Source: Dendrobates tinctorius (taxonomy: Eukaryota). Taken from it: 64,000 nt of DNA. Positions 26,316-48,594 of this stretch are shown one piece after another; positions within the stretch are counted from its first letter, which is position 1, and each line of letters begins with the position of its first letter. The stretch spans positions 9,052,001 to 9,116,000 of the forward strand of contig NW_027361917.1 of assembly GCF_039654945.1 (NCBI RefSeq), read 5' to 3'. Both the position numbers and the translations under genes were made by a program. Below the pieces are notes generated by a model. The model searched no databases, had not been told where the DNA came from, and saw only the letters and a program-made list of their open reading frames with translations.

Positions 26316-26472
26316 TAACTATTTCCAGCAACTTCACTGAGTCCTGCATGTGTCCAACCTATATCATTCATCTTTGCACCACATATAATGGTATTTAACT
26401 ATTTCCAGCAACTTCACTGAGTCCTGCATGTGTCCAACCTATAGCATTCATCTTTGCAGCATATATAATGGT
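26316..26472. repeat. 80-bp tandem repeat; a third unit at 25310-25379 is separated by the Penelope insertion
   Basis: GAGTCCTGCATGTGTCCAACC recurs at 25311, 26339 and 26419. Confidence 0.85.
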
Positions 26473-26799
26473 GCATAGTTATTTCAACTCACCCTGCTTG
26501 TCCCCTTATGCTATTGAGGTCAAGTAACTTTTCAAAGTGGTTTATGATCCATGTAGGCCTGGACACTTGTTTATTTGCTAAATACATTTATTGTGTCCTG
26601 CTGTCCTAACTTAGTTTGATTGCTAACGAGTAAGGAGAAAAAAAAAAGGAAGATCTTAGAACTGGCCTTCTATAAATTCAGAGCTAGCCTGGGGATGCAT
26701 TTATGCAGGGGGGCATTTATGTACATGTAATCGAAGTACATGTATCAAAGTACGCTGGCAATTATAACATGGCAGTTAGACAGGGCAGGAGACAGGTAA

Positions 26800-29700
26800 G
26801 ACAAATAAATAAATCTATTCCTTGTACATTTGGACTACCACAAATATTTGCCATATGCATTTGTATAATTTATATCCTGGCTGCTGCATTTACACACACC
26901 CACCGCCCTGACATTAACTCTCTACACTCCATCCATATTGGCCCCTCACTCCTTTCCTCTCCTATGTATAGCACTCACGCTGTTTTCACATTGCTTCACA
27001 TCACAGATCCATTCAGTCCCACCTTTCAACATCAAAGATGCTCTCACAAATCACTTAACCATCTGCTCACTCTTTCTATCCTCCTTCTCCTAGTCGCAGG
27101 AGACATTGCTCCCAACCCTGATCCCCCATGTTATAGAAAGTCAAACCCCCCAACTGCTACAGAAACCCCTCTAATCTTATTAATATTCCCTGCCTGCCAT
27201 CTGTCTCTCTTAATTGTGCCCTTTGGAGTTCTCGCTCAGTGTGTAACAAACTCTCCTTCATTCATGACTTTTTCCTTTCTAATTCTCTTAACCTTCTGGC
27301 TCTTACTGAAACCTGGATCCAGCAGTCAGACACTACCGCTGCTGCTGCTCTTTCATATGGTGGACTACACTTCTCTCATACCCCAAGATCAGACAATAGA
27401 GCAGGTGGAGGCGTTGGTCTGCTCCTATCACCAAAATGTACCTTTCAGGTTATCCCTCAAGTACCCTCACTTGTCTTCCCTTCTTTTGAGGTCCATGCCG
27501 TCAGACTCTACACCTCCTTCTCCATGCGAGTGGTGGTGGTATATCGTCCTCCCGGCCCCTCCCATCAGGTCCTGGATCATTTTGCCACTTGGCTCCCACA
27601 TTTTCTCTCCTGTGACATCCCTACCCTCATCATGGGCGATTTCAACATCCCCATTGCTCTTCCCCTCTCCCCATCTGCTACTCATCTTTTATCTCTAACC
27701 TCATCGTTTGGCCTTTCGCAGCTTACTAGTTCTCCAACACATGAAGCGGAAACTCCCTCGACTTGGTCTTCTCTCGGCTTTGTTCAGTTGATGATTTAGC
27801 AAACTCCCCTCTCCCGCTCTCTGACCTCAACCTTCTTTCATTCTCTATCAAGAACTGCCAGGCTGCTCAGGTCATCCCCACTGTCCATATTTATAGAAAC
27901 ATACAGGCCATTAACACCCAGAAACTTATGAAGAACTTGCAGTCTTCATTGGCCCCTATCTCCTCCCTCTCATGTCCTGATTCTGCATTGAAGCATTACA
28001 GTGAAACACTTCAAAGTGCCCTGGATGAATTTGCACCTCCTATACAAAGAACACCACAACACAGACGTCGACAACCCTGGCACACCCTGGAAACACGTTT
28101 CCTGCAGCGGTGCTCCAGGTGCGCCGAACGTCTGTGGAGGAAATCCAATCTACCCGAATATTTCATCCATTATAAATTTATGCTTCGAACATACAACACT
28201 GCCCTTCACCTCTCAAACCAAACCTATTTCAACACCCTCATCATCTCACTGTCCAATAACCCTAAACGTCTAATTGACGCTTTTCATTTTCTACTCAACC
28301 CAAGAGTATAGGCCCCAACCATGGAGCTTCAAGCTGACGAATCTGGCCAATTATTTCAAAGAAAAAATTGACCAGATCCGACAGGAAATTATCTCCCAAT
28401 CACCTCATACCATGCACTGTCCTCCCTCCCCCACTGCATCTAGCTCACTCTCTGATTTTGAACCAATCACAGAAGAAGAAGTAAGCAGGCTCCTTGCATC
28501 TTCTCGCCCAACCACTTGCACCAGTGACCCATTTCCGTCACATCTGCTCCAGTCCCTTTCCCCTGCTGTCACCCCTCACCTAACTAAAATATTTAACCTC
28601 TCTCTCTCTTCTGGTATCTTTCCCTCCTCATTTAAGCATGCCATCATACATCCACTACTTAAAAAACCATCCCTCGACCAAAACTGTGCCGCTAACTATA
28701 GACCTGTCTCTACTCTTCCCTTCATCTCTAAACTCCTGGAACGCCTGGTCCACTCCCGTCTTATCCGCTATCTCTTTGATAACTCTCTTCTCGACTCTCT
28801 CCAATCCGGTTTCCGCTCTTTACACTCTACTGAAACTGCCCTCACTAAAGTCTCAAATGATCTACTAACAGCTAAATCAAATGGTCATTACTCCATGCTA
28901 ATTCTCTTGGATCTCTCTGCAGCATTCGACACTGTGAATCATCAGCTCCTCCTCACTATGTTCCGTTCCATTGGCCTCAAGGACACCATTCTCTTCTGGT
29001 TTTCCTCCTATCTCTCTGACCGCTCCTTTACTGTATCTTTTGCTGGCTCCTCCTCCTCTCATCTTCCCCTTGCTGTTGGGGTTCCTCAAGTATCAGTCCT
29101 AGGCCCCCTCCTCTTCTCTTTGTACACTGCCCCTATTGGTCAAACAATCAGTAGATTTGGTTTCCAGTACCATCTCTATGCTGATGACACCCAATTATAT
29201 GCTTCTTCTCCTGACATCACGCCTGCCTTTCTAGAAAACACCAGCGATTGTCTAAACGCTGTGTCTAACATCATGTCCTCACTATATTTGAAACTGAACC
29301 TGTCAAAGAGTGAACTCCTTGTGTTTCCTCCTGCTACTAATGTACCTATACCCGACATTGCCATTTCCGTGTGTGGTTCCACTATTACTCCCCAGCATCA
29401 TGCCCGCTGTCTTGGGGTCGTACTTGACTCTGAGCTTTCCTTTGTCCCCCACATTCGATCACTGGCTCGCTCTTGTTATCTGCACCTCAAAAACATTTCT
29501 AGAATTCGACTTTTTCTTACTTTTGACTCCGCAAAAACTCTCACTGTTTCTCTTATTCATTCTCGTCTCGACTATTGTAACTCTCTTCTAATCGGTCTCC
29601 CTCTTACTAAACTCTCCCCCCTCCAATCTGTCTTGAATGCTGCTGCCAGGATCAAATTCCTCGCCAATCGTTACACCAATGCCTCTACCTTGTGCCAGTC

Positions 29701-30385
29701 ATTACACTGGCTACCTATCCACTCCAGAATCCAGTACAAACTTATTACCCTCACCCACAAAGCTCTTCATGGCACAACACCACCCTACATCTCCTCCCTT
29801 GTTTCAGTATACCACCCTACCCGCGCCCTCCGTTCTGCTGATGACCTGAGGTTAGCATCCACAATAATCAGAACCTCCCACTCCCGTCTCCAAGACTATA
29901 CACGTGCTGTGCCAATTTTTTGGTATGCACTTCCCAGGTCAATACGATTAGTCCCTAATCCCCACAATTTTAAGCGTGCCCTGAAAACTCATTTATTCAG
30001 ACTGGCCTACCGCCTCAACACATTAACCTAATCTATCCCTGTGTGGCACAGCCAAAAGTTTTTACCATAACCAGGTTCCCCGCATCATGTTCCCACATGC
30101 TTTATACATCCATTAGCCCTCTGTGTCTGTACTGTTACACACTTAACATTATAGCTGGTCCATACAATCAGGGCAACTGTTACCACCCACTTTTCGTGTC
30201 TCCCCTTTTCCTCATAGATTGTAAGCTTGCGAGCAGGGCCCTCATTCCTCTTGGTATCTGTTATGATCTATGTGATTATTGTTATGCTGTTATGTCTATT
30301 GTCTGTACAAGTCCCCTCTGAAATGTAAAGTGCTGCGGAATATGTCGGCGCTATAGAAATAAAATGTATTATTATTATTATTATT
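26800..30385 (+). mobile_element. L2-clade LINE, near full length, frameshifted
   Basis: APE fragments (LALTETW, GGGVGLLL, GDFNI), an RT ORF, and a 3'UTR ending AATAAAATG(TAT)n. The 5' boundary is approximate. Confidence 0.9.
28274..30031 (+). pseudogene. L2 reverse transcriptase domain (open remnant of a disrupted EN-RT ORF)
   Basis: [51 protein letters not shown] and LHWLP motifs. Confidence 0.93.
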
Positions 30386-31672
30386 AGGTGCAATTCAGAT
30401 AGACGCCCTGCCTGCCAGTCAGTTTTCATGTTATTTTTTCTAAGGGGGAGGATGTAGGAACTTATGTATACTATACCAGGCTGAATCTAGTACCAGGAAT
30501 ACAATGCTAAGCTTTATTTGTTTTCAGATTTACAAAGCTAAACAATATCTCTGACAATTGCTCTGAAAGGAGAATAATAGGCTGCCCAGGGGAATGGGAA
30601 GCGGTGGCGGAGAATGGAAAGAGTGAACTTCCTGACAATTGCATCTGCACAATAGGTGATTGATTAGGTAATGTGAAACGCAGGCAGCTTTTTAAAAAAT
30701 CTTTTGGCCACTTTTTTTCCAATCCATAAAACGTAAACTTTTCACGTATCCTACCTGTATTATATGGTATATTTCTACACCAGTATAACAGCACGGGAAT
30801 AAAGGCACAGGAATAGATTCCAAGGATCAGGCTTCTCCTTTTCACTCTCTGTAGATACAGGTCGTTTATGTCTGTACAAATCTTATAGGACTTGGCCCAG
30901 GTCCCGAAGAAAAAGTGGAACAGATAAGTAAAATGTTTTCCAGAAGATGAATTTTCAATTAATAGTTTAAAGTCAATCTGTCACCAGATTATACAGTAAA
31001 AGCTGCATACATTACTAAATAGATATCTTAAACTCAATGAGACTGCTGTACTTACTTTGAAAATCCATATTAGAATGGCTGTATAATCCTTCGAGCATTG
31101 TCTGTATGGAGTCTTACAAAACGGGCAAAGTGCCATTGTAGAAAATATGTAAATTACCGCTCTCATATGGAATTGTAAGGTAGTTACCTCACTCTCCTAA
31201 GGAGCACTTGTGAGATAATTTATTTCCTTCTGAAATTTTCATACTTTTTCTCAATTTGTCTGTAAATTAATTTCTAGATTTATTCCTGGTCATGTTACAA
31301 GGCTCATTAAAAAAAAAATTGGACATTGACAAGTCAGCTATCTGCTATGGAGCATTGCCTGTAAAACTGCATTCTCAGCTGGGAATTTAAGGAGAAGCAG
31401 TACTTCCCTCTCTATGGGTACATTGGCACTCTTTATCAGTGTTCCTTGACATACCGTGGGGAAAAAAGTGCATTATTTAGTCAGCCACCAATTGTGCACG
31501 TTCTCCCACTTAAAAACATGAGAGAGGCCTGTAAATGACATCATAGGTAGACCACAACTATGAGAGTCAAAATGAGAAAACAAATCCAGAAAATCATCTT
31601 GTCTGATTTGGCAAGATTTATTTTGCAAATTATGGTGGGAAATAAGTATTTGGTCCTTAAAAAAAGTTTGTC

Positions 31673-32696
<1,024 letters not shown>

Positions 32697-33030
32697 AGTG
32701 GAGTTTGCAGTGTGACTGTTTGAGGTTGTGGACAGGTGTATTTTATACTGATAACAACTTCAATCAGGTGCCATTACTGCAGGGTACACGTAATGAGTGG
32801 AGGACAGAGGAGCCTCTAAAAGAAGCTATGAGAGCTAGAAATCTTGCATGTTTTTAGGTGACCAAATACTTATTGTCCACCATAATTTGAAAACTAAATC
32901 TTGCCAAATCAGACAATGTGATTTTCTGGATTGGTTTTCTCATTTTGACTCTCATAGTTGTGATCTACCTATGATGTCAATTAAAGGCCTCATGCTTTTA
33001 AGTGGGAGAACTTGCACAATTGGTGGCTGA

Positions 33031-33376
33031 TTAGGACTGCTCAGATCCTTCCTTATCTGATTTGTGGACAGCATAATGACATCTGTGCCCTCATGTAATC
33101 ATTGTGAAGCCGCCAAATATCCAATCCTCTTAAAAGTTAATTTTGAGTCTCTCATCACCTCGACAATATTAAATGCAGCCCAGCTGATGTCATAGCCCAG
33201 CATTTGCAAATAGGTTAGCTTTCAAACGGCATTAGCTTTCACAGCAATGTTGTCTTGCTTAAGTTCTTGTTGGATCTCATCGATACAGTGGGAGATATAT
33301 TTTGCCTCATCCTCTTTGTGATTGCAGATTCTCCTGACCAGATCCTGCAGGTTCTTGTTGAACATGCGGTCAATAC
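33031..33376 (-). pseudogene. AP3D1: Intronless AP-3 complex subunit delta fragment A (approx. codons 9-124)
   Basis: The minus strand translates IDRMFNKNLQDLVRRICNHKEDEAKYISHCIDEIQQELKQDNIAVKANAV*KLTYLQMLGYDISWAAFNIVEVMRDSKLTFKRIGYLAASQ*LHEGTDVIMLSTNQIRKDLSSPNQ, which matches the vertebrate AP3D1 N-terminus with two stops. Confidence 0.93.
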
Positions 33377-33598
33377 CACATGGTTGCTATGGGCGGGAAA
33401 TAGAGTTAGCTGAGTTGCAGCCATTTTTGCTTCTGTGTCCGGTGACAAGAGTCTGGAGCGGCTCGATCCCGTGCACAGACATGGCGGTCCATATGGTGAA
33501 GGGAAGTATTGACTTCATGTTCGACAAGAACCTGCAGGATCTGGTCAGGGGAATCCACAATCACAAAGTTAATGCGGCAAAATATATCTCCCACTGTA
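33377..33598 (+). pseudogene. AP3D1: AP3D1 fragment B (putative 5'UTR plus first ~39 codons)
   Basis: ATG at 33481 gives MAVHMVKGSIDFMFDKNLQDLVRGIHNHKVNAAKYISHC, versus AP3D1 MALKMVKGSIDRMFDKNLQDLVRGIRNHKEDEAKYISQC. Confidence 0.9.
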
Positions 33599-34183
33599 CA
33601 TGCATGGTGGTGAGCAAATACTTGAGTGACACCACAGGATGGCAGGCAACCAGATATAATTAAAACAGCCAACCGTATAATTATCTTTGAAGTTAGAGCA
33701 TCAACACTGACTATGCATGATTATACAAGGAAAAAAGACTAGTGTATATACTTAAAGTGCACAGTGCTTGTAAACTAAACATGGATAGTTATAACTAGAA
33801 CACAACCTAGTTCAGGCAAAGTGCATAGTGCTAAGGTAGAACCTGAGGCTAAATCAGTGATGTTGCCAAAACAGTTAGAATGGATGACAGACAAGAGATT
33901 GCTGAATGATTACCTGAACCATGCGATTGTGTCACTTCCCCTACGCGCGTTTCAGCGGCGTGCCTTCGTTAGGGGGGAAATGAACTCCATATAGATTGAT
34001 TTTGCTCAATCAGTGCAAACAATATCAGGATAGGGACATAACTCACTGACAAAGGAGAATGGTAATGTCAAGTTGGGTATTTATGAAAACAATTGCAAGA
34101 GAAAAAAAAAACAGGGGATCGGCACAATGCAAAGTTTTCAGCAAATTTTATGGGGAAAACAAATATTTTCTAAAATAGATATA

Positions 34184-34222
34184 CAGTGGGGAAAAAAAGT
34201 ATTTAGTCAGCCACCAATTGTG
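34184..34222 (+). mobile_element. Isolated outer TIR end of Tc1 family 2
   Basis: TA-CAGTGGGGAAAAAAAGTATTTAGTCAGCCACCAATTGTG, matching 31454-31496. Confidence 0.85.
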
Positions 34223-34239
34223 GTCAGCATAATGACATC

Positions 34240-35097
34240 TGTTATGAATGGGTCACCGAGGAGGATGGCAGGAACAGGCTAAGCCACCAGAAGAACAGTG
34301 AGGTTGGTAACTAAGAGGATTGCAGACCCCTGATCCTATCTGCACAACTAGCAGTAGCCGTGGAGCATTCCTATGATGCCCTAGACGCCTTGTCACAGCC
34401 AGAGGACTAACTAAGCCTAAAGACAGAAAGATTTCATCTAAACTGCCCCGGAGCAGATCCCCAAAGGAATAGGCAGCCCCCAAACATATATTGTAGGTGA
34501 GACAAAATGAGACATAAACACAGGCAGAGAAAAGACTGAGAAAACGGTGGGGCCCAAGCTGTCTAGACAGGACAGGATAGAAAAGATACTGTCTGCAATC
34601 ACGCACAAAACCCTGAAAAACTCCAACACTTTTGATATACAAAAAACCTGAGATCACACGATCTCACCCCCGCTAGATCAGCACTCTTGTATAAACTGGC
34701 AGCAAGCAAAAAGACACTAACATAACAGGGGACTGAACAAGCTGCAACATATGAAGCAGGGCCCAGCGCTGCTCCCAGCACGGAGCACACTGAACCCTAA
34801 CAGCAAAACAGAAAGCAAAAAAGACACAACCAGATTAGATGCAAAGGATTAGCAAAAGAATCACTTAGCTGAACCATGCAGATCAGGCAGGGGACAAAAG
34901 AGCTCCAAATGCACACTGAGGAAATCACCCGCAACCTCCAAGAGCAGCCAGCTCAATTATATGCTCCCAGCCAGTAATCCCAGGTTTCCAATTATCGTTG
35001 TCAGGTGGGGAACTGACCAACTCCACTATTCTCAGTAACCACCAGAGGGAGCAGAGGGAGCTTCGGCTCAGAACTCCGAGCAAGAGAGTTCACAACA
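34240..35097 (-). repeat. 3' LTR of the Gypsy element
   Basis: Direct repeat of 39184-40057, adjacent to the PPT. Confidence 0.95.
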
Positions 35098-37780
35098 GTA
35101 CCCCTCCTTGAGGAGGGGTCACCGAACCCTCATCCACGCCACCAGGCCGATCAGGATGGGCCCGGTGAAAGGCACGAATCAATCTCTTGGCATGGATGTC
35201 AGAAGCAGAGACCCAAGAATTATCCTCCTGGCCATAACCCTTCCACTTGACCAAGTACTGAAGTCTCCGTCTAGCCAGATGAGAATCCAATATCTTCTCT
35301 ACCTCATACTCCAAATTACCCTTAACTAGTACAGAGTCAGAGGGCGCTACCATGGGAACAACTGGCTCCACAAACCTTTTGAACAAAGATTTATGAAAGA
35401 CGTTATGAATCTTAAACTTAACTGGAAGAGCCAAACGAAAAGAAACGGGGTTAAGGATTTCCAAAATCTTATAAGGTCCAATAAACCTTGGCCTGAATTT
35501 TGGACATGCAACTTTCATGGGAATATTTTTTGAGGACAACCAAACCATATCACCCACTTTAAACCGGGGACCAATGGTCCTATGCCGGTGGGAAAACCGT
35601 TGGGCCTTTTCCTGAGAGTGGGACAACTTATCCACTGCTTGGTCCCAAATCTGCTGCATTCTCTCTACCACAGAATCCATACTTGGTCAGGCAGGAGCTT
35701 CTACCTGCCCCGAAGAAAATCGAGGATGAAACCCAAAGTTACAAAAGAAAGGAAACATCAAAGTGGCAGAGCTAGCCCTATTGTTTAGCGCGAATTCGGC
35801 CAAGTGCAAAAATGAGATCCAATCATCCTGATCAGCAGATATGAAACATCTAAAATAGGACTCCAACGTCTGGTTTGTTCTCTCAGTCTGCCCATTGGTC
35901 TGAGGATGAAATGCAGAGGAGAAAGACAACTGAATTCCCAGTTTGGAACAAAAAGCCCTCCAAAATCTGGAAACAAACTGGACCCCTCTGTCTAACACAA
36001 TGTTCTCAGGAATCCCGTGCAAACGAACCACTTGTTGTAAAAACAAGGGCACCAACTCAGTAGAAGATGGCAACTTTGGGAGTGGTACAAGATGCACCAT
36101 CTTAGAAAATCTATCACAGATCACCCAAATAACAGTCGTTCTCTGAGAGACAGGGAGATCAGAGATAAAATCCATTGAGATATGGGTCCATGGCCTCCTG
36201 GGCACCGGCAGAAGCATCAGCAAACCACTAGCACAAGAACAGGGCTTAGACTGAGAACAAGTCCCACAGGACTGCACGAAATTCCTGACATCACGAGATA
36301 AGGCAGGCCACCAAAAAGACCAACTCACCAAATCTCTGGTACCAAAGATACCTGGATAACCAGCCAACGCGGAACAATGAATTTCAGTCAATACTCTTTT
36401 CCTCCACTGGTCAGGGACATACAATTTTACAATTACAATCGTTCAGGTTTATCCTCCTGAAATTCCTCCAGGGCACATCTCAAATCAGGAGAGATGGTGG
36501 AAAGAACTACACTCTCATTTAGAATGGTCGTAGGCTTGGTCACGTCAAGAGAATCCGCAAAGAAACTCCTAGAAAGGGCGTCCGTCTTAACATTCTAAGG
36601 TCCCAGAAGAAAGGAGACCACAAAATTAAAACATGTGAAAAACAAGACCCACCTAGCCTGTCTAGGATTTAAGTGCTTGGCTGATTCAAGATAAATCAAA
36701 TTCTTGTGATCGGTGAGGACCACAACTTGATGTCTAGCTCCCTCCAACCAATGTCTCCACCCTTCAAATGCCCACTTCATGGCCAATAATTCCCAATTCC
36801 CCATGTCATAGTTACGTTCAGATGGAGAAAATTTTCGAGAAAAGAAGGCACAGGGATTCATCTTAGAGGTTACCGGATCTCTTTGAGACAAAACGGCTCG
36901 TGCATCAATCTCAGAACCATCTATCTCCACCTGAAATGGGAGTGAAACATCAGGTTGCCATAGAACAGGAGCAGAAGTGAATCTCTGCTTAAGCTCCTGA
37001 AATGCCGTGACTGACTCTGGAGACCAACTTACCACATCAGGGCCCTTTTTGGTCAAATCCGTCAGAAGTTTAACAATACCAGAAAAATTACTTATAAATT
37101 TATGGTAGAAATGAGCAAAACCCAAAAACTTCTGAAGAGCTTTCAGAGAAGTGGGCTGAACCCAATCATAAATGGCCTGTACTTTAGCTGGGTCCATTTC
37201 AATAGCAGACGGGGACAAAATGAATCCCAAAAATGAAATCCTCTGTACACCAAAGAGGCACTTCGATCCCTTAACATACAGAGAATTTTCCCTTAAAATC
37301 CGGAACACAGTCCGGACATGTTCCACATGAGAATCCCAATCAATGGAAAAAATAAAAATACCATCCAGATAAATGATCAAAAACTTATTTACAAGGTCCT
37401 GGAAAATATCGTTCATAAAAGATTGGAAGATGGAAGGGGCATTAGTGAGCCCAAAAGGCATCACCAGGTACTCAAAATGTCTCTCCAGAGTATTAAACGC
37501 CATCTTCCATTCATCCTCGTGCTTGATGCGAATAAGATTATATGCCCCCTGAGGTCAAGTTTGGTAAACCAACAAGCACTTTTAAATCTGGAAAATAAAT
37601 CAAATATCAGTACGCGTTACCCCTGATTTCTAACAGCGATTTTGCTAAGGGAACGATAGTCAATACATGGCCTTAATGAGCCATCTTTTTTGGCCACAAA
37701 GAAAAAAACAGCACCCAAAGGCAGATAGGATGGTCTGATATAACCCTTCTCCAATGATTCTTTGATATAAGATTGCATAG
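35090..37780 (-). pseudogene. Gypsy pol: RT, RNase H, integrase and chromodomain, frameshifted
   Basis: YLVMPFGLTNAP, YLDG (mutated YLDD), TDHKNL, ISMDF..FSK..PQTNGQTER, GPY motif, and chromodomain YEVEKILDS...YLVKWKGYG...SW. Confidence 0.93.
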
Positions 37781-37788
37781 CATCATGT

Positions 37789-39051
37789 TCAGGTACAGGT
37801 AAGTTGAAAAGTCAGTTGAAAAATCAGCCAAATAGGAACATCTTGAGACTGGGAAGAGGTGGAGAAAACAGGAGTGTAACTAAGAACACATTGACAACCC
37901 CAACTCACCACAGACAGAGATTTCCAATCTAAAATAGGATTATGGGTTTGCAACCAAGGAAAACCCAGCACAATAGTATCATGTAAACTGTGCAACACCA
38001 AAAATTTACAATTCTCTTGATGGTCCGGGGTGACCCGCATTGCCACCTGGGTCCAAAACTGGGGTTTATTCTCCGCCAAAGGAGTAGCATCAATCCCCCT
38101 CAAGGGAATAAGGGTTCTCAGGGGCACCATGGGGAAACCACAACGCTTGGCAAAGTCAAGATCCATCAGATTCAAAGCTGCTCCTGAATCAACAAAGGCC
38201 TTAGCAGAAAAAGTAGACAAGGAGCAGATCAAGGTAACTGCCAACAGAAACTTAGACTGTACACTGCCCACCGCAAATGCGTGAGCAAAACGTTTTTCTT
38301 GTTTAGGGCAGACAGAAATAGCATGAGAGGCGTCCCCACAAAAGAAGCATAACTTATTACGCTTTCTAAACTCTTGACGTTGCGTCCTAGACAAAACCCT
38401 ATCACATTGCATGGGTTCAGAAGTTTGTTCAAAAGGCAGCACCGCCTCTCGCGTACTTTTACGTTCATGTAAACGTCGATGAATTTGAATGGCTAATGAC
38501 ATGGAGTCGTTAAGACCAGAAGGGACAGGAAATCCCACCATAACATATTTTACGGTTTCAGCTAGACCTTTCCAAAAGAGAGCTGCTAGGGCATCATCAT
38601 TCCATTTAGTAAGTACCACCCACTTTTGGAAATTCTGGCGGTATAACTCCGCAGCATCCTGACCCTGGTTCAATGCCAATAAGGTCTTCTCAGCTTGTTC
38701 AATAGCATTAGGTTCATCATGCAACAACCCCAGGGCCTGGAAAAATGCATCCACATTAGCCAGAATAGGATCTCCAGGTGTCAGAGAAAAAGCCCAATCC
38801 TGGGGATCGCCGCGCAGCAGGGAGATGACAATTTTAACCTGCTGCACCGAGCTGCCCGGTGAATTAGGCTTCAAGGCAAGAAATAGTTTACAGTTATTCT
38901 TGAAATTCAAAAATTTAGAGCGATCCCCAGAAAACATATCAGGAGCAGGGATCTTTGGTTCTACAGCAGATGATTGAGCGAGATAGGCAGAAATTCCCCC
39001 CACTTCAGCAGCGAGCTGCTCAACACGATCGGATAATTGTTTAGTCCCCAT
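37789..39051 (-). CDS. Gypsy Gag plus aspartic protease (open segment of a broken polyprotein)
   Basis: PDMFSGDR capsid motif, CCHC knuckle [14 protein letters not shown], protease AFVDSGA, and VLGFPWL. Confidence 0.9.
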
Positions 39052-39183
39052 TAAAGAAAGAATCCTCCTACGGCCCCAGAGAGAAAGAGGAAAAAAATAT
39101 ATAAAATAAATTCTGACACTTTTTTTTTTACAATTCTTTCCTTCTTTTGAGTACCCTAGAGTCTGCGGTTAGGTTGGTGATTC

Positions 39184-40057
39184 TGTTATGAATGGGTCAC
39201 CGTGGTGGATGGCAGGAACAGGCTAAGCCACCAGAAGACCAAAGAGGTTGGTAACTAAATGGATTGCAGACCCCTGATCCTATCCGCACAACTAGCAGTA
39301 GCCGTGGAGCATTTCTACGATGCCCTAGACGCCTCGTCACAGTCGGAGGACTAACTAAGCCTAAAGACAGAAAGATGAAATCTAAACTGCCCCGGAGCAG
39401 ATCCCCAAAGGAATAGACAGCCCCCAAACATATATTGTAGGTGAGACAAGATGAGACACAAACACAGGCAGAGAACAGACTGAGAAAACGGTGGGGCCCA
39501 AGCTGTCTAGACAGGACAGGATAGAAAAGATACTGTCTGCAATCACGTACAAAACCCTGAAAAAGTCCAACACTTTTGATATACAAAAAACCTGAGATCA
39601 CACGATCTCACCCCCGCTAGATCAGCACTCTGGTATAAACTGGCAGCAAGCAAAAAGACACTAACATAACAGGAGACTGAACAAGCTGCAACATATGAAA
39701 CAGGGCCTAGCGCTGCCCCCCAGCAGGGAGCACGCTGAACCCTAGCAGCAAAACAGAAAGCAAAAAGAGACACAACCAGATTAGATGCAATGGATTAGCA
39801 AAAGAATGCCTTAGCTGAACCATGCAGATCAGGCAGGGGACAAAAGAGCTCCAAATGCACACTGAGGAAATCACCAGCAACCTCCAAGAGCAGCCAGCTC
39901 AATTATATGCTCCCAGCCAGTAATCCCAGGCTTCCAATTATCGTCGTCAGGTGGGGAACTTCCATCCTTCTGACCAGTACATCCACTACGCTCAGTAACC
40001 ACCAGAGGGAGCAGAGGGAGCTTCGGGTCAGAACTCCGAGCAAGAGAATTCACAACA
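39184..40057 (-). repeat. 5' LTR of the Gypsy element
   Basis: Direct repeat of 34240-35097, upstream of the gag ATG at 39051. Confidence 0.95.
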
Positions 40058-40290
40058 GACATCTGTGCCCTCATGGAAGCATTGTGAAGCCGCCAAGTAT
40101 CCAATCCTCTTAAAAGTAAACTTTGAGGTGCTCATCACCTCGATAATATTAAATGCAGCCCAGCTGATGTCATAGCCCAGCATTTGCAAATAGGTTAGCT
40201 TGCAAACGGCATTAGCTTTCACAGCAATGTTGTCTTGCTTAAGTTCTTGTTTGATCTCATCAAAACAGGGGGAGATATATTTTGCCTCAT
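40058..40290 (-). pseudogene. AP3D1: AP3D1 fragment C; continues at 34218-34239 on the other side of the Gypsy insertion
   Basis: EAKYISPCFDEIKQELKQDNIAVKANAVCKLTYLQMLGYDISWAAFNIIEVMSTSKFTFKRIGYLAASQCFHEGTDV, then DVIMLTT at 34239-34219. Confidence 0.93.
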
Positions 40291-41159
40291 TATCATTAAA
40301 TTCAGAGATTGCTAAGAAATTTTTTTTTGCTTTTGTTGCCATTTTCCGAGACCCGTAACATTTTCATGTTTTTTAGGATGTGGGGCTATCTTATTTTTTG
40401 CTGACGTTTATAATTTTACCATTATGGTATAGATACAATGGTTTAATCGCCTCTTATTGCATTTGATTGTAGTTTTTTGGCGGCCAAAAAAAATCTTAAT
40501 TTTGGTGTTTTGACTTCCTTTTCATTACTCATTTTACTCATCGGAATAATATATTTCATATTTTAATAGATCAGACATTTCTGAATACAGCAATACCAAG
40601 ATTTTTTTTAATTGTCAGAGATTGACAGTGAAATTAACACCCGCGGATGTTAATGGCATATGCTGTTAAAGGCATATGAGGGCTGATTAAATCAGCTGTT
40701 AAGTGTCAGAAAAGATATGGACTCAAGATGCAAGCCCGCATCAAACGCAGTGACACGTCATATGATGTAAATTACGTCTTGTGTCATGAAGGGGCTAATT
40801 ATGATAAATAATAACTGTAATAATAATAACATTGCTATTGCTAAAACAGAAATGTCAGGAGATCAGATTGGTATTTTTAAATAATTTTACTTGCTTTTAT
40901 AACACAATCATATTCCGCAGCACATTACAGCCATTATCATCACTATCCCCAATGGGGCTCATAATCCAAATTCCCTATATCAGGAGGAAACCGTAGTACC
41001 TGGAGGAAACCCACGTAAACACACAAAACCCTTGCAGATGTCGTCCATGTTGCAATTTGATCTCAAGCCCTCAGAGGCTGCAATGCAACAGTTCTAACCA
41101 GAGAGCTAATGTGCTGCCCGTAGCTACTGTGGGAATATAAGAATATATATAGAGTTTAA

Positions 41160-41461
41160 AAGAAACCTGTTATGTAAAAAAAAGTTATTAAGCTGCAGAT
41201 ATGGGGTTGATCTACAGGTGAATAGCATTCCGAGAGCCCCTCTGCCAGGAGGAAATGAACTTCAGTCTTCCCGGCAGCCGCAGGCTTTCAGTCATAGAGG
41301 TACGGCCGCTGCAGCATGAGTCATCGCTCAGTACATAGTCAGCGGAGATTGTATCCATGCCCTGGCACTGACTGGCAGTGGGGCTTTCAGTGCAGTTGTT
41401 AAACTGCATATTAACCCCATTTCTGCAGGTTAATAGTGTTTTTTTACATGACAGGTTCCCT
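41160..41461. mobile_element. TTAA-flanked (Kolobok/T2-type) MITE
   Basis: TTAA-AAGAAACCTGTTATGTAAAAAAA ... TTTTTTTACATGACAGGTTCCCT-TTAA. Confidence 0.8.
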
Positions 41462-43286
41462 TTAAGTACTAAGTATTAAAGCAATTATATGTACAATTGA
41501 GGATACAGTAGCTTGAGGTCTGTTTGCAATGCAAAGTACAATATCAGCTTTCATTATGTTACATTTGTAAATTTTAATGTGATGTATTTCTTTTAAATTC
41601 AGTCCATAGTACTCTGGCAGACTCAAAACTATAAACACATAATAGGCGTAAGACTAATATCCCATAGAAAACCAATATAAATGTAACTAATATAATTTCA
41701 GTATTTCCCCCAAAGCATTTACATCGGTGGTTTCTCTGATGTATGAAGTTGCCAAGGTAACCGGAATCCCTGGGATTAATCACAGTGTGATACTATATGT
41801 TCCCATAGATGATAGTCGCCATCTGATCCTTGTAAGGTGCAAGGTTCAAGCTATGATGCATTGGGGTCGTAAACTGCATTGGACTCTGCAGATGTATACA
41901 TCGCTTGTTGTGACAAAGTAATATTTCTCATGCACAAATCTGATCAAATCCGCCATTTTTGGCTTTTTATTAAATAACCTGAATTAAGCAATTCGATTAA
42001 TCACAATAATATGCGAGAGGCGTGTACCTGCTACAAGGGAGTCAGGCAGCATTGGTTGAAAAGGACAACTGCTCCAATCCCTTTATAGCCAGTTGCTCAT
42101 TGGGGTGCAGTAAATTATGTTGCCAAGGACGAGGTGGCAGCATTTACACTGCTGCCACGTAGAGAGATTACCAGCGTGAAATCACTGGGCTCCTGTAGAG
42201 AACAATATAATGTAGTCAAATCAAACCTGTCTGCCTGACACATTTTAAGAAGAAATTCACATTTTCTGATCAAGATGCTGCAAGAACGCATCAATTTTAG
42301 ACCATAATTCAGCTCCATTTGCCGAGTATGAAGTCTGTATGTGGCACTACAGAAATCGAGATTCTATAGATTCAATCATCTATACTTTGAAGATCTTTTT
42401 TTGTGTCGTTCAGGTTAGCGGGATACAGACTGAAAAACCGAACCAAATTGTTGTCAACTTGGTATTACTTTTCCGATAAGGTCCGATGTGATCCAAACCA
42501 AAGCGCACAGGGAAAAAAACAGTGAACCCAATTTTCTATATAAACACATGTATTATAAATATTATGTTTTATTAAATGAAACATATTTTTTTTCTTACCG
42601 CTGATTAAAGCTGTTCAGTGACCTATGATCCGTCAATTTTTTGCTGACGCTGTAGTCAGAGAAGCTTCACTGCTTCCCTTCCTGGACCTTTCACACAGCG
42701 ATGCCACAGTTCAACAGTTCTGCAGGTCTCCAATGTTGACAGCAAAAGCAACTTATGATTTGACTGGCAGAAGGGAGGAAGAACAAAAGTGTAGCAAAGC
42801 ACAACAGTGTATGGGACCAGACATAGACATTCAGAAGTTTGAAATAAATATGAGGATTCTGAAACATTGGGAAGTTTTCAAAACCTATCCCGAATTTTCT
42901 TTTTAATTGTGTTGGGATTAGTGAGTGATAAGTTGATGACACAAAGGCATCAATCTGCATCAGCTATTTTGCTCATTAAGATTTTATAAAGCATGTCAGT
43001 AAAAAGACAAGAATTGGATCAACATTAAAGCCAGAAGGAAAGCCTCCAGTTCAAAATAATTCAAGCATAGGACATCCATAGAGGTTTGATACGTAAATAA
43101 ATTAGTTCATCTCCAAAACAAAGAAAAAGAGGTATGCAAACAACAGGGTTCATCTGATAAATATTTATTAATCAAAAAAGTACATACAAGCAACATAGAC
43201 AACTAAAAACAATTAAAAAGGGCCCATGGCTCATAGCAACAGACTATGTCACCCAAAATAAGACTGTGGTTGTCTCTAGTTAATCA

Positions 43287-43545
43287 ATATGAAACTGAAG
43301 GGGAGAAGATGCAGATTAGATATGAGAAAAAGCTTTTTGGACAGTGATGGTGATCAATGAGTGGAACAGGCTGCCACGAGAGGTGGTGAGTTCTCCTTCA
43401 TTGGAAGTCTTCAAACAGAGGCTGGACAGACATCTGTCTGCGAGGGTTTAGTGAATCCTGCAGTGCTGCATTGAGCAGGGGGTTGGACACGATGACCTTT
43501 GAGGTCTCTTCCAACTCTAACATGAATAATATTCTAACATGACTA
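43287..43545 (+). mobile_element. Short CR1 3' fragment
   Basis: Reverse-complement homolog of 12090-12340. Confidence 0.85.
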
Positions 43546-44324
43546 TTATGCATACAGTATGCTACATGCAAAGTTACATTGCAAAAACATGATACATTAT
43601 CCCTAGACAACAAATGCAGTATGGTGCCAGTACAATAATAGAACTTCAGTATGTAATAAAGTGCTCAGAGTCATATATTTATATATAGATATATATATAT
43701 ATAGATATATATATCTATATATACACAGTATATAGCAAAACAAGTGCTGAATTACTATTTACAGTCCCTAAATCATGGCAAAAAGAGCAAAGTCTGCCAA
43801 ACAAGAATAATACCAAGCAGCCCAAAAGATCCCAGGACCCTTACATGCATCCGATCAAGAAAGGGAGTTTAGGCTCCAGGCCTCTTAAATAGGCAGAGTG
43901 CATTGCTAAAAACATCTCCGGCTAATAGCTGGGATATGTTTGGTATATAAGGCATCCTCCCCTATTGGGAGTTGCCTTAGCAATTTTCGTTCAGTGTGTA
44001 TCCTGCTAGCTAGTTGATAGAGCCCAATTCCTGTGCTGTCTGATCCTGTCTGCCCTGTCTTCACCTGTTCCAGTCCATCTTGCTGACCCCTACCCGAATT
44101 CACCCTGCCTGTGTCTAGTCCTGATCCTGAACCGTCTGACCCACACCTGTGCCGCTAACCTCACCTTCTGAACCTGCACCTGTGAACCTGAATCTGTGAT
44201 CCCGTACCTGTGGCTGTCCTGTGCTCTGATACTAGTCCTGCTTGAACCCAATCCAACAGCAGTCTTCCAGCCGAGCCATCCTGCTAACCAGCTCCTGGCC
44301 AGTCCTACTTCCCAGTTGTAATGG

Positions 44325-44580
44325 CAAAGTGCAAAAATGACCAAAACAACAGCAAAAAATCGATGTGAACAGAGTAATGGTCTGCAGAACCACTCCTTTA
44401 TAGAGATGTCTTGCTAAATGCCTATCATTTCTACCTGTTGTCTGTTTCATTTGCACAACAAGAGAATATGATTAATAATCAGTGTTGCTTCATAACTGGA
44501 CAGGTTGATTTCACAGTAGTGTGATTGACTTGGATTACATTGTGTTTTAGCGTTCCCTTTATTCCTTTATTTTTTGAGCA

Positions 44581-44583
<3 letters not shown>
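44325..44583. mobile_element. Terminal fragment of another Tc1-like element, followed by (TA)n at 44584-44618
   Basis: Ends TTTATTTTTTGAGCAGTG-TA, a Tc1-like terminus next to a TA run. Confidence 0.55.
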
Positions 44584-44622
<39 letters not shown>

Positions 44623-45199
44623 ATTAGAACACTTCTAAACTCAGTCATATACAGTAGATTGACTAAAAATCACTACAAAAGAAACAAGAAACTGCAGAGA
44701 GGGATTTTTTAATATTTAGTGAATCTGATTATTACTCACCTGCTTTGCACTGGCATGGAATACAGTAATTTTCAATGATTGCATGTTATTTGCTAAAGGT
44801 CAGAAAGCAAAAAATTGTCCATTAAGCAATTATGAAAACTGTTTTTGTGTTGCAGTGCCATTTTTTCTTTGGACATCTTTGGAGGTGCATATTTGCTTTG
44901 CTATTTGCGTAAAATGATAAATATTGCTAATGATAACTTAAAGGAGTTGTCCACCAATCTGATAACTAGTTCTATGGATAGGTTGACATAATAGCAGTGG
45001 ACCTCCCCTTTAACAGTTTACCCATGGGCAGTGTTGGATAAATGATTGCAGTTGTGCTGGGCACTACAGCTGCTGTTAGCTGCAGTGCTAGATGCACGAT
45101 ATGAACAGCTCTATGCCTGCGGCCGCAATTAAGGCGACACAGTGTTTGCTGGACCCTTCATTTATCTTATCCTAGGAGATGCCAGGAGTTGAACTCTAA

Positions 45200-45406
45200 G
45201 ACCGGGGTTACACTTGCGAGTGCAATGCGAGAAACTCACGCCAGTCTCTCACCTTAATACCCAGCACTGCCGCTGGCAGTTCGGACCGGAGCGTTCAGCT
45301 GCATAGAAAGAGACATGCAGGTGCACACTCCGGTCCCGAGTGCCGGCGGCAGTGCCAGGTATTCAGGCGAGAGACTCGCATTGCATTTGTAAGTGTGACC
45401 CCGGCC
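45200..45406. mobile_element. Harbinger-type hairpin MITE
   Basis: G(A/G)CCGGGGT(T/C)ACACTT inverted termini and a near-complete palindrome. Confidence 0.75.
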
Positions 45407-45746
45407 TTATGCATAAAATATTAACGGGATTGGCCAATTTTTGTGCTCAGTGCAGCTTCCCTTGCAAAATGACCAGTGCTTCTATCCATAAAATGGTTGC
45501 TGGTAGAGGAGGGAATGACCAAAGCAGGATGTGTCCATCAGCCTTCTCCAATTTTAAAACACCTCACATGGAAAACTCCTCTAGCAACAGCCAGTATATG
45601 GACAGAAGTGCTAGGAAACCTACACTAACAAAAGAAAGTGGCCAACCCCTTTAAAGGCTTATCCTGAGGCCTTTAAATCCTAACACTCTCTGACATATAT
45701 ATCCATTGTGAGTGTTGATCTAATAATGTGCAATGGAGGATATATT

Positions 45747-47070
45747 CAGTATTGTGCAAATGTTTTACGCAGGTCTGGAGAAAATGTTGGAAATATGCTG
45801 GCTTTAAAAAAATAGAAATTGTAATAGTTTATTTTAAACAATTAACAAAATTCAATGTAAATAAATCAAAGAAATATCTAAATCAAATATTTTCTTAGTA
45901 TAATCAACCTTTCCTTTTATAACAGCTCTCCAAACCGACATTTTTCTGTACCCCAATTCCTTTATTGTTGTGTATAGTTGAGTGACTTAGTCTTATTTCT
46001 ATGATGAAGGTATGTCTTTTGGCTGCAATTCTTGATGAAGTTCACTTCTAGCCAGACTCCCCGAACACTAGATAGGTGTAGCTACTGTAGGTCCCACTGC
46101 TGCCATTTCTGACCTGATGGCACTGCTGGACATCTTCTGATTTAGAAGGGAAGTAAAGGGCCTGTCACACTAAGAGATATCGCTAGCAATATCGCTATAA
46201 CTTGTGACATTATAGCGATATTGCTAGCGATATCGCTGTATGTGATACTTACCTACGACCGGCTCCCCCGCTGGTTATTGCCGATCGCGCGAGAACAGGC
46301 TGGACTGTTTCTCGTCGTCAGCTTCCTGCGGCGCTTCCTGCTGTGACGATGAGCGACGCGTGGAGCCGGGCGGGAGGACGCAGGATCGCCTGGTGTGACA
46401 GGTAAGTAGCGACCCCCGACCCCAGCGATGTCGCTAGTGAGATCTGCCTGTGTGGCAGCTCACTAGCGACCACTTAGCGATGTACCAGCGATCCTGACAG
46501 CGTCATCTTCATCTAAGGCATTCATGTTATCCAATTTTTTGTGAGTAATACCGCCAGATACTTATCCAGCATGCAATAATATCAGTGAGATATTTGATTG
46601 GCTCCAACTGTATTGTGCAGCAGGACAATGACTTCCAGTATCCAGCCAATGTAATTAAAAACTATCTTCACCATTAAGAAGAACATGGAGTCCTGTAGTG
46701 ATGACATTACCCGGCAGAGCCCTGATATCAACATAATCAGGCATTACCTGAAGAGACAGAAGAGTTTAGGCAAGCCAGAAAATCTGTGGCTAGTTCTCCA
46801 AGATGTTTGGGACAGCCTCCCTACCGAGTTCTTTCGAATACTGTGTACAAGTGTATCTAGAAGAATTGCTACTTTGTTGATGTTTCGAAGGCAATGGTGC
46901 TGATGCTAAATATTAATTGGATTTTGATTTCTCTTTAGTTCATTCACTTTGTATTTTGTAATTGATAAAAATAAACTATTTACACCACACAATTATCGTT
47001 TCAATTTTTGAAAGCATTCTTACGCTGCAACATTTTTTCCACACCTGCCTAAAACTTTTGCACAGTACTG
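45747..47070. mobile_element. Internally deleted or rearranged Tc1 element, family 3, with a nested MITE fragment (46157-46500)
   Basis: TIR CAGTA(T/C)TGTGCAAA(T/A)GTTTTA(C/G)GCAGGT at both ends. DDE remnants (QQDND, QSPDINII) at 46600-46750. Confidence 0.75.
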
Positions 47071-47627
47071 AATGCCTAGTTGATCGGGCAGATACTGCCT
47101 TTGTACCAGCTTGGTCAGTTATAGAAGTCAGATTCACATACATGGCCAAGCTCCTGCTGTAATTATGAGAATCAGTGAAAATACCAATCCCCACAGTTAA
47201 ATCTCTTATTTCATATTGTCAAAAGTGAAAGCTGCAGGTTTGGCAGCCCTTTAATGCAATGATTTGCTATGGCAGTCAGAGTCATACAATGACCTCTGTA
47301 TATGCCATGTACTGTAGATTAATATATCTAATATTATTACTGTCAGTATAATACTGTCTGGATGTGCTAATAGGTTGCACTACACAAGTATTGCACTGTA
47401 TTACGCAGGCGATGAGTTGTTAAAAAAAAAAGTTTTATGTATTTGAAATAGAAAATGTAGAAAAATCCCAGATTTCCCGATTATAAATGGATTAATCTGG
47501 AAACAATAAGTGCAGTAAAGAAAAGCACATATTTGGTCTTGCTGTTTCTGTAAAGAACAAAAGTTCCAATATTGTGGTTTTTGATTCTCCAACCTTACAA
47601 ACAATGAAAAGAAATGGTCATCAAAAA

Positions 47628-48523: not shown

Positions 48524-48594
48524 TTTATTATCTCCACCTGCTGGACTGGCGCCGGATCCCAACACATGTTTTGGCACGTGGCCTTCATCAGGCG

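Follow-up and report, generated by a model that had tools for sequence, protein, structure and literature searches.

A Tc1 terminal repeat joined to spliced AP3D1 sequence in a poison-frog genome: a possible scar of DNA-break repair

An outer end of a Tc1 transposon is fused directly to antisense AP3D1 sequence of spliced origin in a 64,000-nucleotide stretch of the Dendrobates tinctorius genome (assembly GCF_039654945.1, contig NW_027361917.1, forward-strand positions 9,052,001 to 9,116,000), which is referred to here as the window. This AP3D1 piece (fragment C) lies near two others (fragments A and B) found beside another copy of the same Tc1 family, and all three fall within 1.3 kb once a Gypsy element is removed. 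We consider it an evenly balanced proposition that fragment C is a DNA-break repair scar, and neither a gene nor transposon cargo. The history that we favour would involve microhomology-primed repair of breaks at two neighbouring Tc1 copies, either as a single compound event or as two that were tightly linked, with AP3D1 mRNA or cDNA as the template.

RESULTS

A terminal repeat fused to antisense AP3D1

The junction is composed of four features:
34182-34222, forward strand: remnant of Tc1 copy no. 2, consisting of TA followed by the outer 39 nt of a terminal repeat (positions 1-41)
34218-34222, no strand: microhomology TTGTG, 5 bp, common to the Tc1 repeat and antisense AP3D1 exon 4 (compare 33062-33066 in fragment A)
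34218-34239, reverse strand: left part of fragment C, antisense AP3D1 exon 4 (DVIMLTT), identical at 24 of 25 nt to 33062-33086 of fragment A
40064-40297, reverse strand: right part of fragment C, antisense AP3D1 running from the remainder of exon 4 through exons 3 and 2 into about 10 nt of exon 1 (residues about 30-108)

The segment at 34182-34222 is the outer end of a Tc1 element, with 86% identity to the left repeat of the copy at 31455-33031. It carries the hallmarks of a Tc1/mariner end, in that the sequence at 34182 reads TA-CAGTGGGG, the repeat starts with CAGTG beside the TA, and a related copy encodes a Tc1-type transposase. The 41-nt string occurs once in the window, where 0 chance matches are expected, and its contig depth in the DNA runs is very high. 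Beyond 34222, family members read CAAGTTCTCCCACTTAAAAAG (loose ends of DNA contigs from three frog runs), whereas the window reads GTCAGCATAATGACATC instead of this usual continuation, and the position 34222/34223 is therefore a true breakpoint. The canonical continuation CAAGTTCTCCCACTT after 34222 is absent from the window. An earlier note, prepared from the sequence alone, had described a perfect TA plus a 39-bp outer repeat of this same family, fused directly to AP3D1 through the 5-bp TTGTG, and both observations are borne out, since TTGTG is present in the repeat as well as in antisense AP3D1. Overlaps of at least 5 nt are expected at about 0.5% of random junctions (chance about 0.005). 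The remaining Tc1-like matches in the window, at 6136-7238 and 51648-51991, belong to a distant family.

The piece at 40058-40300 matches residues 30-108 of AP-3 delta-1 (E = 2e-45, versus 8e-07 for AP-1 gamma) and scores 3e-22 for Adaptin_N. The right part of fragment C is 94% identical to fragment A, and its frame is open. Genomic contigs place parental exon borders at 33130/33131 and 33209/33210 in the coordinates of A, with one contig showing an 80-nt intron, and transfer of these borders puts the exon junctions of C at about 40110/40111 and 40189/40190. Vertebrate gene fragments likewise show the exon 4/5 border after NQIRK. Fragment C is intron-less across its exon 4/3 and exon 3/2 junctions, and because at least two exon junctions are crossed it must have originated in spliced mRNA. 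It is cut off at both ends (residues about 30-113), with no run of A or T at either.

Six changes are clustered in the last 35 nt of C (40262-40297), beside the right junction, as expected for error-prone synthesis. At that junction, which is placed only approximately (about 40297), we found neither a Tc1 footprint nor a clear microhomology. Extension of C past 40297 into exon 1 was rejected for lack of significant similarity, since 1137 of 2000 shuffles did equally well. Retention of intron 1 in the tail is disfavoured by a match at 7-8 of 10 positions to the exon-1 end of A and B.

A Gypsy element inside fragment C

The two parts of C are separated by a retrotransposon:
34240-40057, reverse strand: Ty3/Gypsy chromovirus-type LTR retrotransposon, 5818 bp, inserted in C, with broken reading frames
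34240-35097 (858 nt) and 39184-40057 (874 nt): its LTRs, with TG..CA ends
34234-34239 (left) and 40058-40063 (right): target-site duplication GACATC

The reverse strand encodes gag, protease, RVT_1, RNase H, Integrase_H2C2, rve, SH3_Tf2-1 and Chromo domains. Two LTRs with TG..CA ends, a 6-bp duplication and the order gag-PR-RT-RH-INT identify the element as Gypsy, and its chromodomain, located at the integrase end, assigns it to the chromoviruses. When the element and one GACATC are removed, an AP3D1 frame without stops is restored (FNDNEAKYIS...HEGTDVIMLTT), just as the earlier note had proposed. That note had also suggested dating the insertion by its LTRs, which differ at 45 of 858 sites (5.2%, K2P 0.054), a value close to the A-C divergence of 5.8%. 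Because the element sits inside C, the similarity of these two divergences means that A and C cannot differ much in age.

Fragments A and B at the neighbouring Tc1 copy

To the left of this junction lie four further features:
31455-33031, reverse strand: Tc1 copy no. 1, with a decayed transposase (HTH_Tnp_Tc3_2, 4e-19; DDE_3, 3.7e-10)
33032-33376, reverse strand: fragment A, antisense spliced AP3D1 (residues 9-125), beginning with 15 nt of exon 5 and reaching back as far as codon 9
33377-33604, forward strand: fragment B, sense AP3D1 comprising the 5' UTR, exon 1 and the start of exon 2 (residues 1-39)
33607-34181, no strand: spacer X, single-copy DNA that separates two Tc1 ends and has only its self-match in the window

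The terminal repeats of Tc1 copy no. 1 are 187 nt long and 90% identical to each other. Its right repeat lacks the outer 25 nt and adjoins fragment A, and the normal continuation of the family after 33030 reads CTAAATAC...CCCCACT (loose ends of DNA contigs). The translation of A contains two stop codons and scores 5e-11 for Adaptin_N; parental AP3D1 exons in intron-bearing genomic contigs cover 33047-33130, 33129-33209 and 33210-33307. Parental exon-1 contigs from three species all begin aligning at 33377, the start of B, and A and B form an inverted repeat of 93 nt with 89% complementarity.

In fragment A the junction links position 26 of the repeat, read outward, with exon 5 (Q125), and in fragment C it links position 41, read inward, with exon 4 (T113/N114), so that the claimed difference in breakpoint holds. 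A difference in orientation relative to the repeat had been claimed as well. This is correct insofar as one junction uses the right repeat and the other the left, but the polarity is the same, with Tc1 on the left and antisense cDNA running rightward on the forward strand in both A and C.

Fragment B terminates in CCCACTG followed by TA, a match at 9 of 10 positions to the Tc1 terminus and target TA, which indicates that a Tc1 end also borders spacer X on its left. The composite at 31457-33604 is bordered by TA on either side. From the end of B and the 41 nt at 34182-34222, we infer that two Tc1 copies flanked spacer X. We also considered an inversion of X, through which the tip lost from copy no. 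1 would have become the 41-nt piece. This is less likely because the pieces overlap by 16 nt, and because the CCCACTG-TA end of B fits better with two Tc1 ends facing X.

AP3D1 sequence in the window is confined to the 5' exons 1-5, with no 3' end and no poly(A), and self-comparison of the window revealed none to the left of either Tc1 piece. Spacer X matches one exact contig (depth 5.7, run X2) and is also found in organism D. A small repeat is included in the spacer at about 33893-33976.

Relationship of A and C to parental AP3D1

Fragments A and C differ at 14 of 233 nt and at 1 of 25 nt (5.8%), in agreement with an initial count by eye of about 14 in some 233. At 33096, 33099, 33164, 33222 and 33272, parental contigs show that C carries the parental letter and A a derived one, and the same polarity was assigned at three further sites from protein conservation; four A/C differences are left unpolarised by this scheme. 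Within exon 2, two such sites are the only differences between the parent and A. A protein word search with the 81 residues of C returned only short fragments from other animals and no frog AP3D1.

Derived letters shared by A and C, which the earlier note had named as the result that would overturn its interpretation, were not found: at the sites readable in parental contigs, no substitution against the parent is common to both, and C is parental at the five read and three conserved sites. Derived changes appear to number 8-12 in A versus 3-6 in C. Per-exon counts taken at face value (12 versus 3) give p = 0.035, and the comparison is not significant when the tail of C is included (12 versus 6). 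An excess in A would fit an older A and counts against a single episode. At one further position B and C read TAATG, where A and human EDE read GGATG, which hints that B and C may derive from one template molecule.

Copy number

Contig depth, a rough guide that was read over 33000-34300, ranges in run X2 from 3 to 19 over fragment A versus 5.7 to 11 over the unique spacer X, and at most two contigs are present at any listed A/C difference site. Depth over the AP3D1 part is single-copy-like in the DNA runs of two species, and thus no chimeric family has spread; a dispersed family of Tc1-AP3D1 chimeras is rejected on this basis. A genome-wide count of such chimeras had been suggested as a check, and these depths give no sign of more. 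Likewise, contig depth does not point to two or more TIR-AP3D1 copies with target-site duplications of their own.

Fragment C itself is present in the reads, as precisely its seven specific letters appear, across an exon junction, in a 79-nt contig from run X2, although X2 may be the assembly's own sample and hence not independent. In organism D, spacer X is accompanied only by parental exons over A, an absence made weak by holes in the contigs.

DISCUSSION

Proposed history of the locus

The sequence of events that we favour would begin with two copies of an abundant Tc1 family flanking spacer X, at a distance of 575 bp from each other. Breaks at both copies, probably caused by transposase excision followed by interrupted gap repair, would have been mended by microhomology-primed synthesis on AP3D1 mRNA or reverse-transcribed cDNA. 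At copy no. 2, the growing forward strand is proposed to have stopped after 41 nt of the left repeat, where its 3' end (...TTGTG) could pair with ACC-ACA-A in exon 4 of the mRNA. Synthesis would then have proceeded toward the mRNA 5' end through exons 3 and 2 into exon 1, turning error-prone, before the end of C became attached to the flank on its right, at about 40297, and the remainder of copy no. 2 was lost. At copy no. 1, similar priming from repeat position 26 through the overlap CTGA could have yielded A, and the opposite break end could have yielded B through the overlap CTGTA. The Gypsy element was inserted into C afterwards.

The pattern of overlaps is seen at the junctions of C, A and B alike. 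The sequence shows the junctions and their microhomologies, the spliced origin, the lack of spread and the later Gypsy insertion, whereas excision of Tc1 as the source of the breaks, RNA or cDNA as the template, and the assignment of A, B and C to one episode are what we infer. No outgroup allele with an intact Tc1 copy no. 2 was seen, which counts against the proposed history.

The earlier note concluded that the same transcript had been joined to the same terminal repeat at least twice, through either recurrent capture or one complex template-switching or local-hopping event. A second and different junction does exist. However, independent recurrent capture is argued against by the occurrence of three pieces of one mRNA within 1.3 kb, by single-copy depth and by similar ages, and we judge one complex template-switching event to be the better of the two options.

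Alternative explanations

A two-step history is unlikely, but it is the alternative that survives best. Here A and B arose first, and a later break at the neighbouring Tc1 was repaired from the DNA copy A (33062-33317), 1.1 kb away, so that C is a local duplicate of A. The extent of C is nested within A, TTGTG exists in A at 33062-33066, and gap-filling template switches favour donors within a few kb (PMC8277862). However, none of at least eight A-derived letters is found in C, and copying would need to have followed the origin of A almost at once; moreover, the TAATG in the tail of C matches B rather than A.

True recurrent capture, in which AP3D1 mRNA was used independently at two times, is improbable. 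Such reuse might be favoured by the 9/10 match to the Tc1 terminus (CCCACTGTA), a terminus-like motif present in AP3D1 exon 2, and by other short matches to the repeat. Breakpoints that differ in both partners are compatible with it, as is the greater decay of A, with its two stops versus an open frame and its larger number of derived changes (8-12 versus 3-6). Nevertheless, two independent uses of one mRNA inside 1.3 kb are very unlikely a priori, and the Gypsy LTR divergence bounds the age of C near that of A. A preferred filler would also predict more chimeras among the very many Tc1 copies, whereas depth over A is single-copy-like.

Even less probable is an older AP3D1 processed pseudogene that was later duplicated, inverted, invaded by Tc1 and trimmed by deletions, the scenario that the earlier note set against its own interpretation. 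End-joining deletions between Tc1 and a nearby retrocopy can also generate microhomology. Yet AP3D1 sequence is absent to the left of both Tc1 pieces, the fragments stem from the mRNA 5' end and lack the 3' end and poly(A), unlike LINE-made retrocopies, and no derived letters common to A and C were found. In addition, A meets the right repeat and C the left, so one duplicated unit cannot yield both, and organism D carries spacer X with only parental exons over A (weak evidence, given the contig holes).

A mobile Pack-type chimera, in which Tc1 repeats carried and moved the AP3D1 fragment, is close to refuted and very improbable: a TA directly precedes the repeat (34180-34183) and the composite at 31457-33604 is TA-flanked on both sides, but any Tc1 end is normally flanked by TA, DNA runs of two species show single-copy-like depth over the AP3D1 part, and C has a single repeat match, with no partner repeat to its right and no family member across 40298-51600 in the window self-comparison. 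Capture, in the sense of a transposon carrying host DNA, is thus not supported for C.

Relation to known repair processes

Under the repair history that we favour, the locus looks like a known kind of break-repair accident and not a new mobile element. The closest parallel is double-strand-break repair mediated by reverse-transcription products in mouse zygotes, where pieces of spliced Pcnt and Inadl mRNA that lacked poly(A) were captured at breaks with microhomology, including as multi-piece insertions (Ono et al. 2015, PMC4516963). As in that system, C is an internal mRNA piece without introns, incomplete at either end and lacking both poly(A) and a target-site duplication of its own; further points in common are microhomology of 1-7 bp at a junction, the possibility of several pieces per repair and a vertebrate germline or zygotic setting. 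The locus differs in that a transposon terminal repeat, and not a nuclease cut, is the site of the break, that three pieces of one mRNA occupy two breaks 575 bp apart, and that the proposed event is ancient.

Gap filling with microhomology has also been documented for animal DNA transposons that bear terminal repeats, with frogs among the hosts and TcMariner elements accounting for 115 cases (Tan et al. 2021, PMC8277862), and Tc1/mariner elements become shorter through abortive gap repair (PMC3814204). These processes share with C a host-transposon join through microhomology, a single copy and template switching, and frogs and TcMariner elements are well represented among them. However, Pack-TIRs by definition have transposon sequence on both sides and derive mostly from nearby genomic DNA, whereas C is bordered by a repeat only on its left and comes from spliced mRNA.

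Templating by RNA has precedents as well: Pol theta is able to reverse transcribe RNA in repair (PMC8195485), transcript RNA can serve as a repair template in human cells (PMC12065846), and RNA-mediated end joining has been described (PMC11390984). Pairing of a few bases between a DNA 3' end and an RNA could prime synthesis of an antisense strand, which is the polarity of A, B and C. Those studies use transcripts of the broken locus itself, whereas here the transcript is that of an unrelated gene. LINE-mediated processed pseudogenes likewise place spliced host mRNA sequence in the genome, but C lacks the 3' end, poly(A) and long target-site duplication of such copies, and the 5' part of the mRNA is kept rather than lost.

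Implications

As a single locus without sign of function, this finding leaves existing knowledge unchanged. It nevertheless provides a natural, germline-fixed example, with three junctions whose microhomologies can be read, of transposon-associated breaks apparently patched by a vertebrate cell with spliced mRNA sequence. A broader proposition, which we advance tentatively and regard as doubtful, is that in this poison-frog lineage breaks left by the very abundant Tc1 elements are regularly mended by microhomology-primed reverse transcription of cellular mRNAs. If true, both ends of a break could prime on one mRNA, as proposed for A and B, and neighbouring breaks could share that RNA, as proposed for C. 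DNA-transposon activity would then constitute a separate route to retrocopies that retain the 5' part and lack poly(A). If frog genomes rich in Tc1 prove to hold many such patches, DNA-transposon activity would be tied to cellular reverse-transcriptase activity and to the formation of retrocopies.

Layout of the locus

Three pieces of AP3D1 (fragments A, B and C) lie beside two Tc1 ends, in the arrangement listed here.

Features of the locus, in window positions along the + strand
31455-33031: Tc1 copy no. 1, decayed, with HTH_Tnp_Tc3_2 and DDE_3 domains on the - strand; its right terminal repeat ends 25 nt early
33032-33376, - strand: fragment A, antisense AP3D1 running from residue 125 down to residue 9
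33377-33604, + strand: fragment B, sense AP3D1, 5' UTR to residue 39; terminates in CCCACTG, then TA
33607-34181: spacer X, a unique stretch of 575 bp
34182-34222: a TA followed by 39 nt from the outer end of the terminal repeat also found in Tc1 copy no. 1
34218-34239 and 40064-~40297, - strand: fragment C, antisense AP3D1, in two parts
34240-40057: Gypsy element dividing fragment C

Within spacer X, a short repeat of ~80 nt (33893-33976) reaches depths of 500-2300 in all three DNA runs, and several contigs omit 64-95 nt just ahead of it (33812/33840 to 33893-33938). Farther left, 26000-30000 has a strongly negative GC skew (-0.30 to -0.43) and includes an open frame of 585 codons at 28274-30031 (+ strand); a retroelement or repeat rich in C probably accounts for this region.

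Spliced origin of the AP3D1 fragments

The contiguous stretch 40058-40300 matches residues 30-108 of AP-3 delta-1 with E = 2e-45, compared with only 8e-07 for AP-1 gamma, and on this similarity the assignment of fragment C to AP3D1 is sound. Contigs derived from the reads of three frogs (organisms A, B and D) were aligned over 33000-34300, and these contigs have holes. Those of the parental gene match fragment A in separate blocks (33047-33130, 33129-33209 and 33210-33307), and in organism D two such blocks are 80 nt apart in one contig, the interval being an intron. Fragment A comprises exons 5 to 1, and fragment C comprises exons 4, 3 and 2 plus ~10 nt of exon 1; neither contains an intron. 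The divergence point of short vertebrate gene fragments, after NQIRK, likewise marks the exon 4/5 border.

Fragment A halts at codon 9, where it directly adjoins fragment B. Exon-1 contigs of three species match fragment B, each from 33377, and although these parental contigs extend upstream, the alignment begins exactly there in all three. The 5' end of the AP3D1 mRNA thus seems to lie at, or close to, the start of fragment B. A LINE-type retrocopy was rejected as the source of fragment C, because this fragment carries neither the mRNA 3' end nor a poly(A) tract. Separately, P0001, an 'AP-3 delta-1-like' protein from elephant that is 142 residues long, holds the same N-terminal part of AP3D1 with several odd substitutions, and may itself be a 5' retrocopy.

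Junctions between Tc1 and AP3D1

The 41-nt repeat string at 34182-34222 occurs once in the window, where the expected number of chance matches is 0, and it consists, as the earlier note had described, of a perfect TA and a 39-bp outer TIR of the same family as Tc1 copy no. 1. In DNA contigs from three frog runs, the many aligned members of this family read CTAAATAC...CCCCACT beyond 33030 and CAAGTTCTCCCACTTAAAAAG beyond 34222. Because the window departs from these continuations at both points, both junctions are breaks relative to the Tc1 family. The overlap is CTGA for fragment A and TTGTG for fragment C; the latter, common to the Tc1 repeat and antisense AP3D1 (it is seen in fragment A at 33062-33066), confirms the 5-bp microhomology reported previously, and an overlap of at least 5 nt is expected in ~0.5% of random junctions. 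The end of fragment B, CCCACTG-TA, matches a Tc1 terminus plus its target TA at 9/10 positions.

A contig of organism B connects 33033 to 34185 on the same strand, omitting fragments A and B and spacer X. Its depth is 6.3 and its shorter side only 26 nt; a fold-back Tc1 with no relation to this locus, or an allele with a deletion, could account for it.

Divergence of fragments A and C from the parental gene

Fragments A and C differ at 14/233 nt, in agreement with the count first made by eye, and at 1/25 nt in the left part. At five sites listed for the parental contigs (33096, 33099, 33164, 33222 and 33272), C retains the parental letter and A is derived; protein conservation makes 33068, 33138 and 33150 A-derived as well. 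With four sites unpolarised (33117, 33141, 33148 and 33149), the A-derived changes number at least 8 and up to 12. Per exon, the differences are 4, 6 and 2 between parent and A, and 4, 6 and 5 between A and C. The three extra differences in exon 2 (33282, 33284 and 33289) look C-derived: fragment B backs the letter of A at 33284 and 33289, as does a conserved Ile codon at 33284, whereas the polarity of 33282, which is synonymous, relies solely on the exon-2 count of the parent in organism D. This gives fragment C 3 changes, to which its exon-1 tail adds another 3.

Derived substitutions shared by A and C, which the earlier note had set against its own reading, did not appear as far as they could be traced: no letter common to both against the parent was shown, as exon 2 has none, exon 4 could hold 2 at most and exon 3 may hold some. 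Organism B has the A/B patch at ~3% divergence, and its copy of fragment A still has the parental letters at 33099, 33164 and 33222. Seen on the + strand, up to 5 of the 12 differences specific to A are G>T changes (33096, 33099, 33148, 33150 and 33222, if the unpolarised 33148 is A-derived), a spectrum that is unusual for neutral decay; two of these changes create the stop codons of fragment A.

Proposed priming of broken Tc1 ends on AP3D1 mRNA

Read along the + strand, fragments A and C share one order: Tc1 sequence comes first, and antisense cDNA follows to its right. A Tc1 strand that was broken or only half repaired would leave such a product, had its 3' end annealed to a few bases of AP3D1 mRNA and then been elongated toward the mRNA 5' end. 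Fragment B has the mirror polarity, starts exactly where parental exon-1 homology starts and ends in CCCACTG-TA, as would result had the opposite break end, X-TA-CAG, primed on the same mRNA. Since fragment B ends like a Tc1 terminus and the repeat begins at 34182, spacer X seems to have been flanked by a Tc1 end on each side, implying two neighbouring copies and, with fragments A, B and C, three primings on one mRNA species.

We favour an origin of all three fragments in one episode, or in two nearly simultaneous ones. This view draws on the clustering of the pieces within 1.3 kb, the lack of letters common to A and C, and a 2-nt variant common to B and C, which read TAATG where A reads GGATG and human has EDE (chance ~0.01-0.02, a rough estimate). 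Of the accounts offered earlier, one complex template-switching event thus fares better than recurrent capture. All six changes of fragment C fall within its last 35 nt, adjoining the right junction, a clustering that resembles the outcome of error-prone synthesis ahead of the final joining more than that of slow decay. We infer this mechanism; candidate enzymes are the reverse transcriptase of a retroelement, which would make free cDNA, and a polymerase of DNA repair, for instance Pol theta.

The Gypsy insertion and its age

The element dividing fragment C is a Ty3/Gypsy chromovirus-type element with TG..CA LTRs of 858 and 874 nt, - strand domains for gag, protease, RT, RNase H, integrase (zinc and core domains), SH3 and chromodomain, and GACATC on both sides. 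Computed excision of the element and one GACATC yields the open frame FNDNEAKYIS...HEGTDVIMLTT, as anticipated in the earlier note, which had also proposed the LTR dating given here. The LTRs differ at 45/858 sites (5.2%; 4.1% outside CpG; K2P 0.054), and anuran neutral rates of ~0.8-3 x 10^-9 per site per year would put the insertion at roughly 9-35 million years ago. Fragment C, in which the element sits, must be at least as old. Fragments A and C diverge by 5.8%, and comparison with the LTR divergence limits the age of fragment A to about twice that of fragment C.

The summed contig depth of the LTR family (34240-34300) is 3-6 x 10^5 in organisms A and B but ~40 or 0 in D, which points to a lineage-specific expansion, whereas the Tc1 repeat (34182-34231) is hugely abundant in all three. 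Given such LTR abundance, ectopic conversion may inflate the LTR clock.

Copy number

Depth over fragment A is 3-19 in DNA run X2 (organism A, possibly the assembly's own sample) and 9-36 in DNA run X10 (organism B). The single contig over the unique spacer has a depth of 5.7 in X2, of the same order, and at most 2 contigs occur at any listed difference site; Tc1 repeat and Gypsy LTR depths reach hundreds of thousands. Within the limits of the contig data, fragments A and C and the parental exons explain all contigs aligned there. A mobile family of TIR-AP3D1 chimeras, for which a genome-wide count had been suggested, is accordingly not supported by these depths.

An inverted repeat with apparent RNA editing

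The arms of fragments A and B are predicted to pair as one long duplex (-193.6 kcal/mol, z = -14.7). A 1208-nt contig from run X1 (organism A, probably RNA) spans 33001-34208, covering fragments A and B, spacer X and the start of the repeat. Its 15 differences are all A>G on the + strand, 14/15 of them in the two arms (33284-33598), and DNA contigs of the same species, from a different sample, have A at these sites. The pattern resembles ADAR hyper-editing, with a transcript from the + strand as its substrate.

Comparison with known systems

The locus does not fit the Pack-TIR definition, as it has a repeat on one side only and is single copy. Closer parallels come from nuclease breaks in mouse zygotes, which capture reverse-transcribed pieces of spliced mRNA without poly(A) through 1-7 bp of microhomology, sometimes several pieces together (PMC4516963). 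Gap filling with microhomology, mostly single copy, occurs at terminal-repeat transposons across animals, with 115 TcMariner cases and many cases in a frog (PMC8277862), and a mosquito Tc1/mariner element has been shortened via microhomology (PMC3814204). Published work documents repair templated by RNA and reverse transcription by Pol theta (PMC8195485, PMC12065846, PMC11390984), and Tc1 and Gypsy elements are plentiful in poison-frog genomes (PMC6278860). This locus adds a new, well-resolved case to the known processes of mRNA capture, gap filling and repair.
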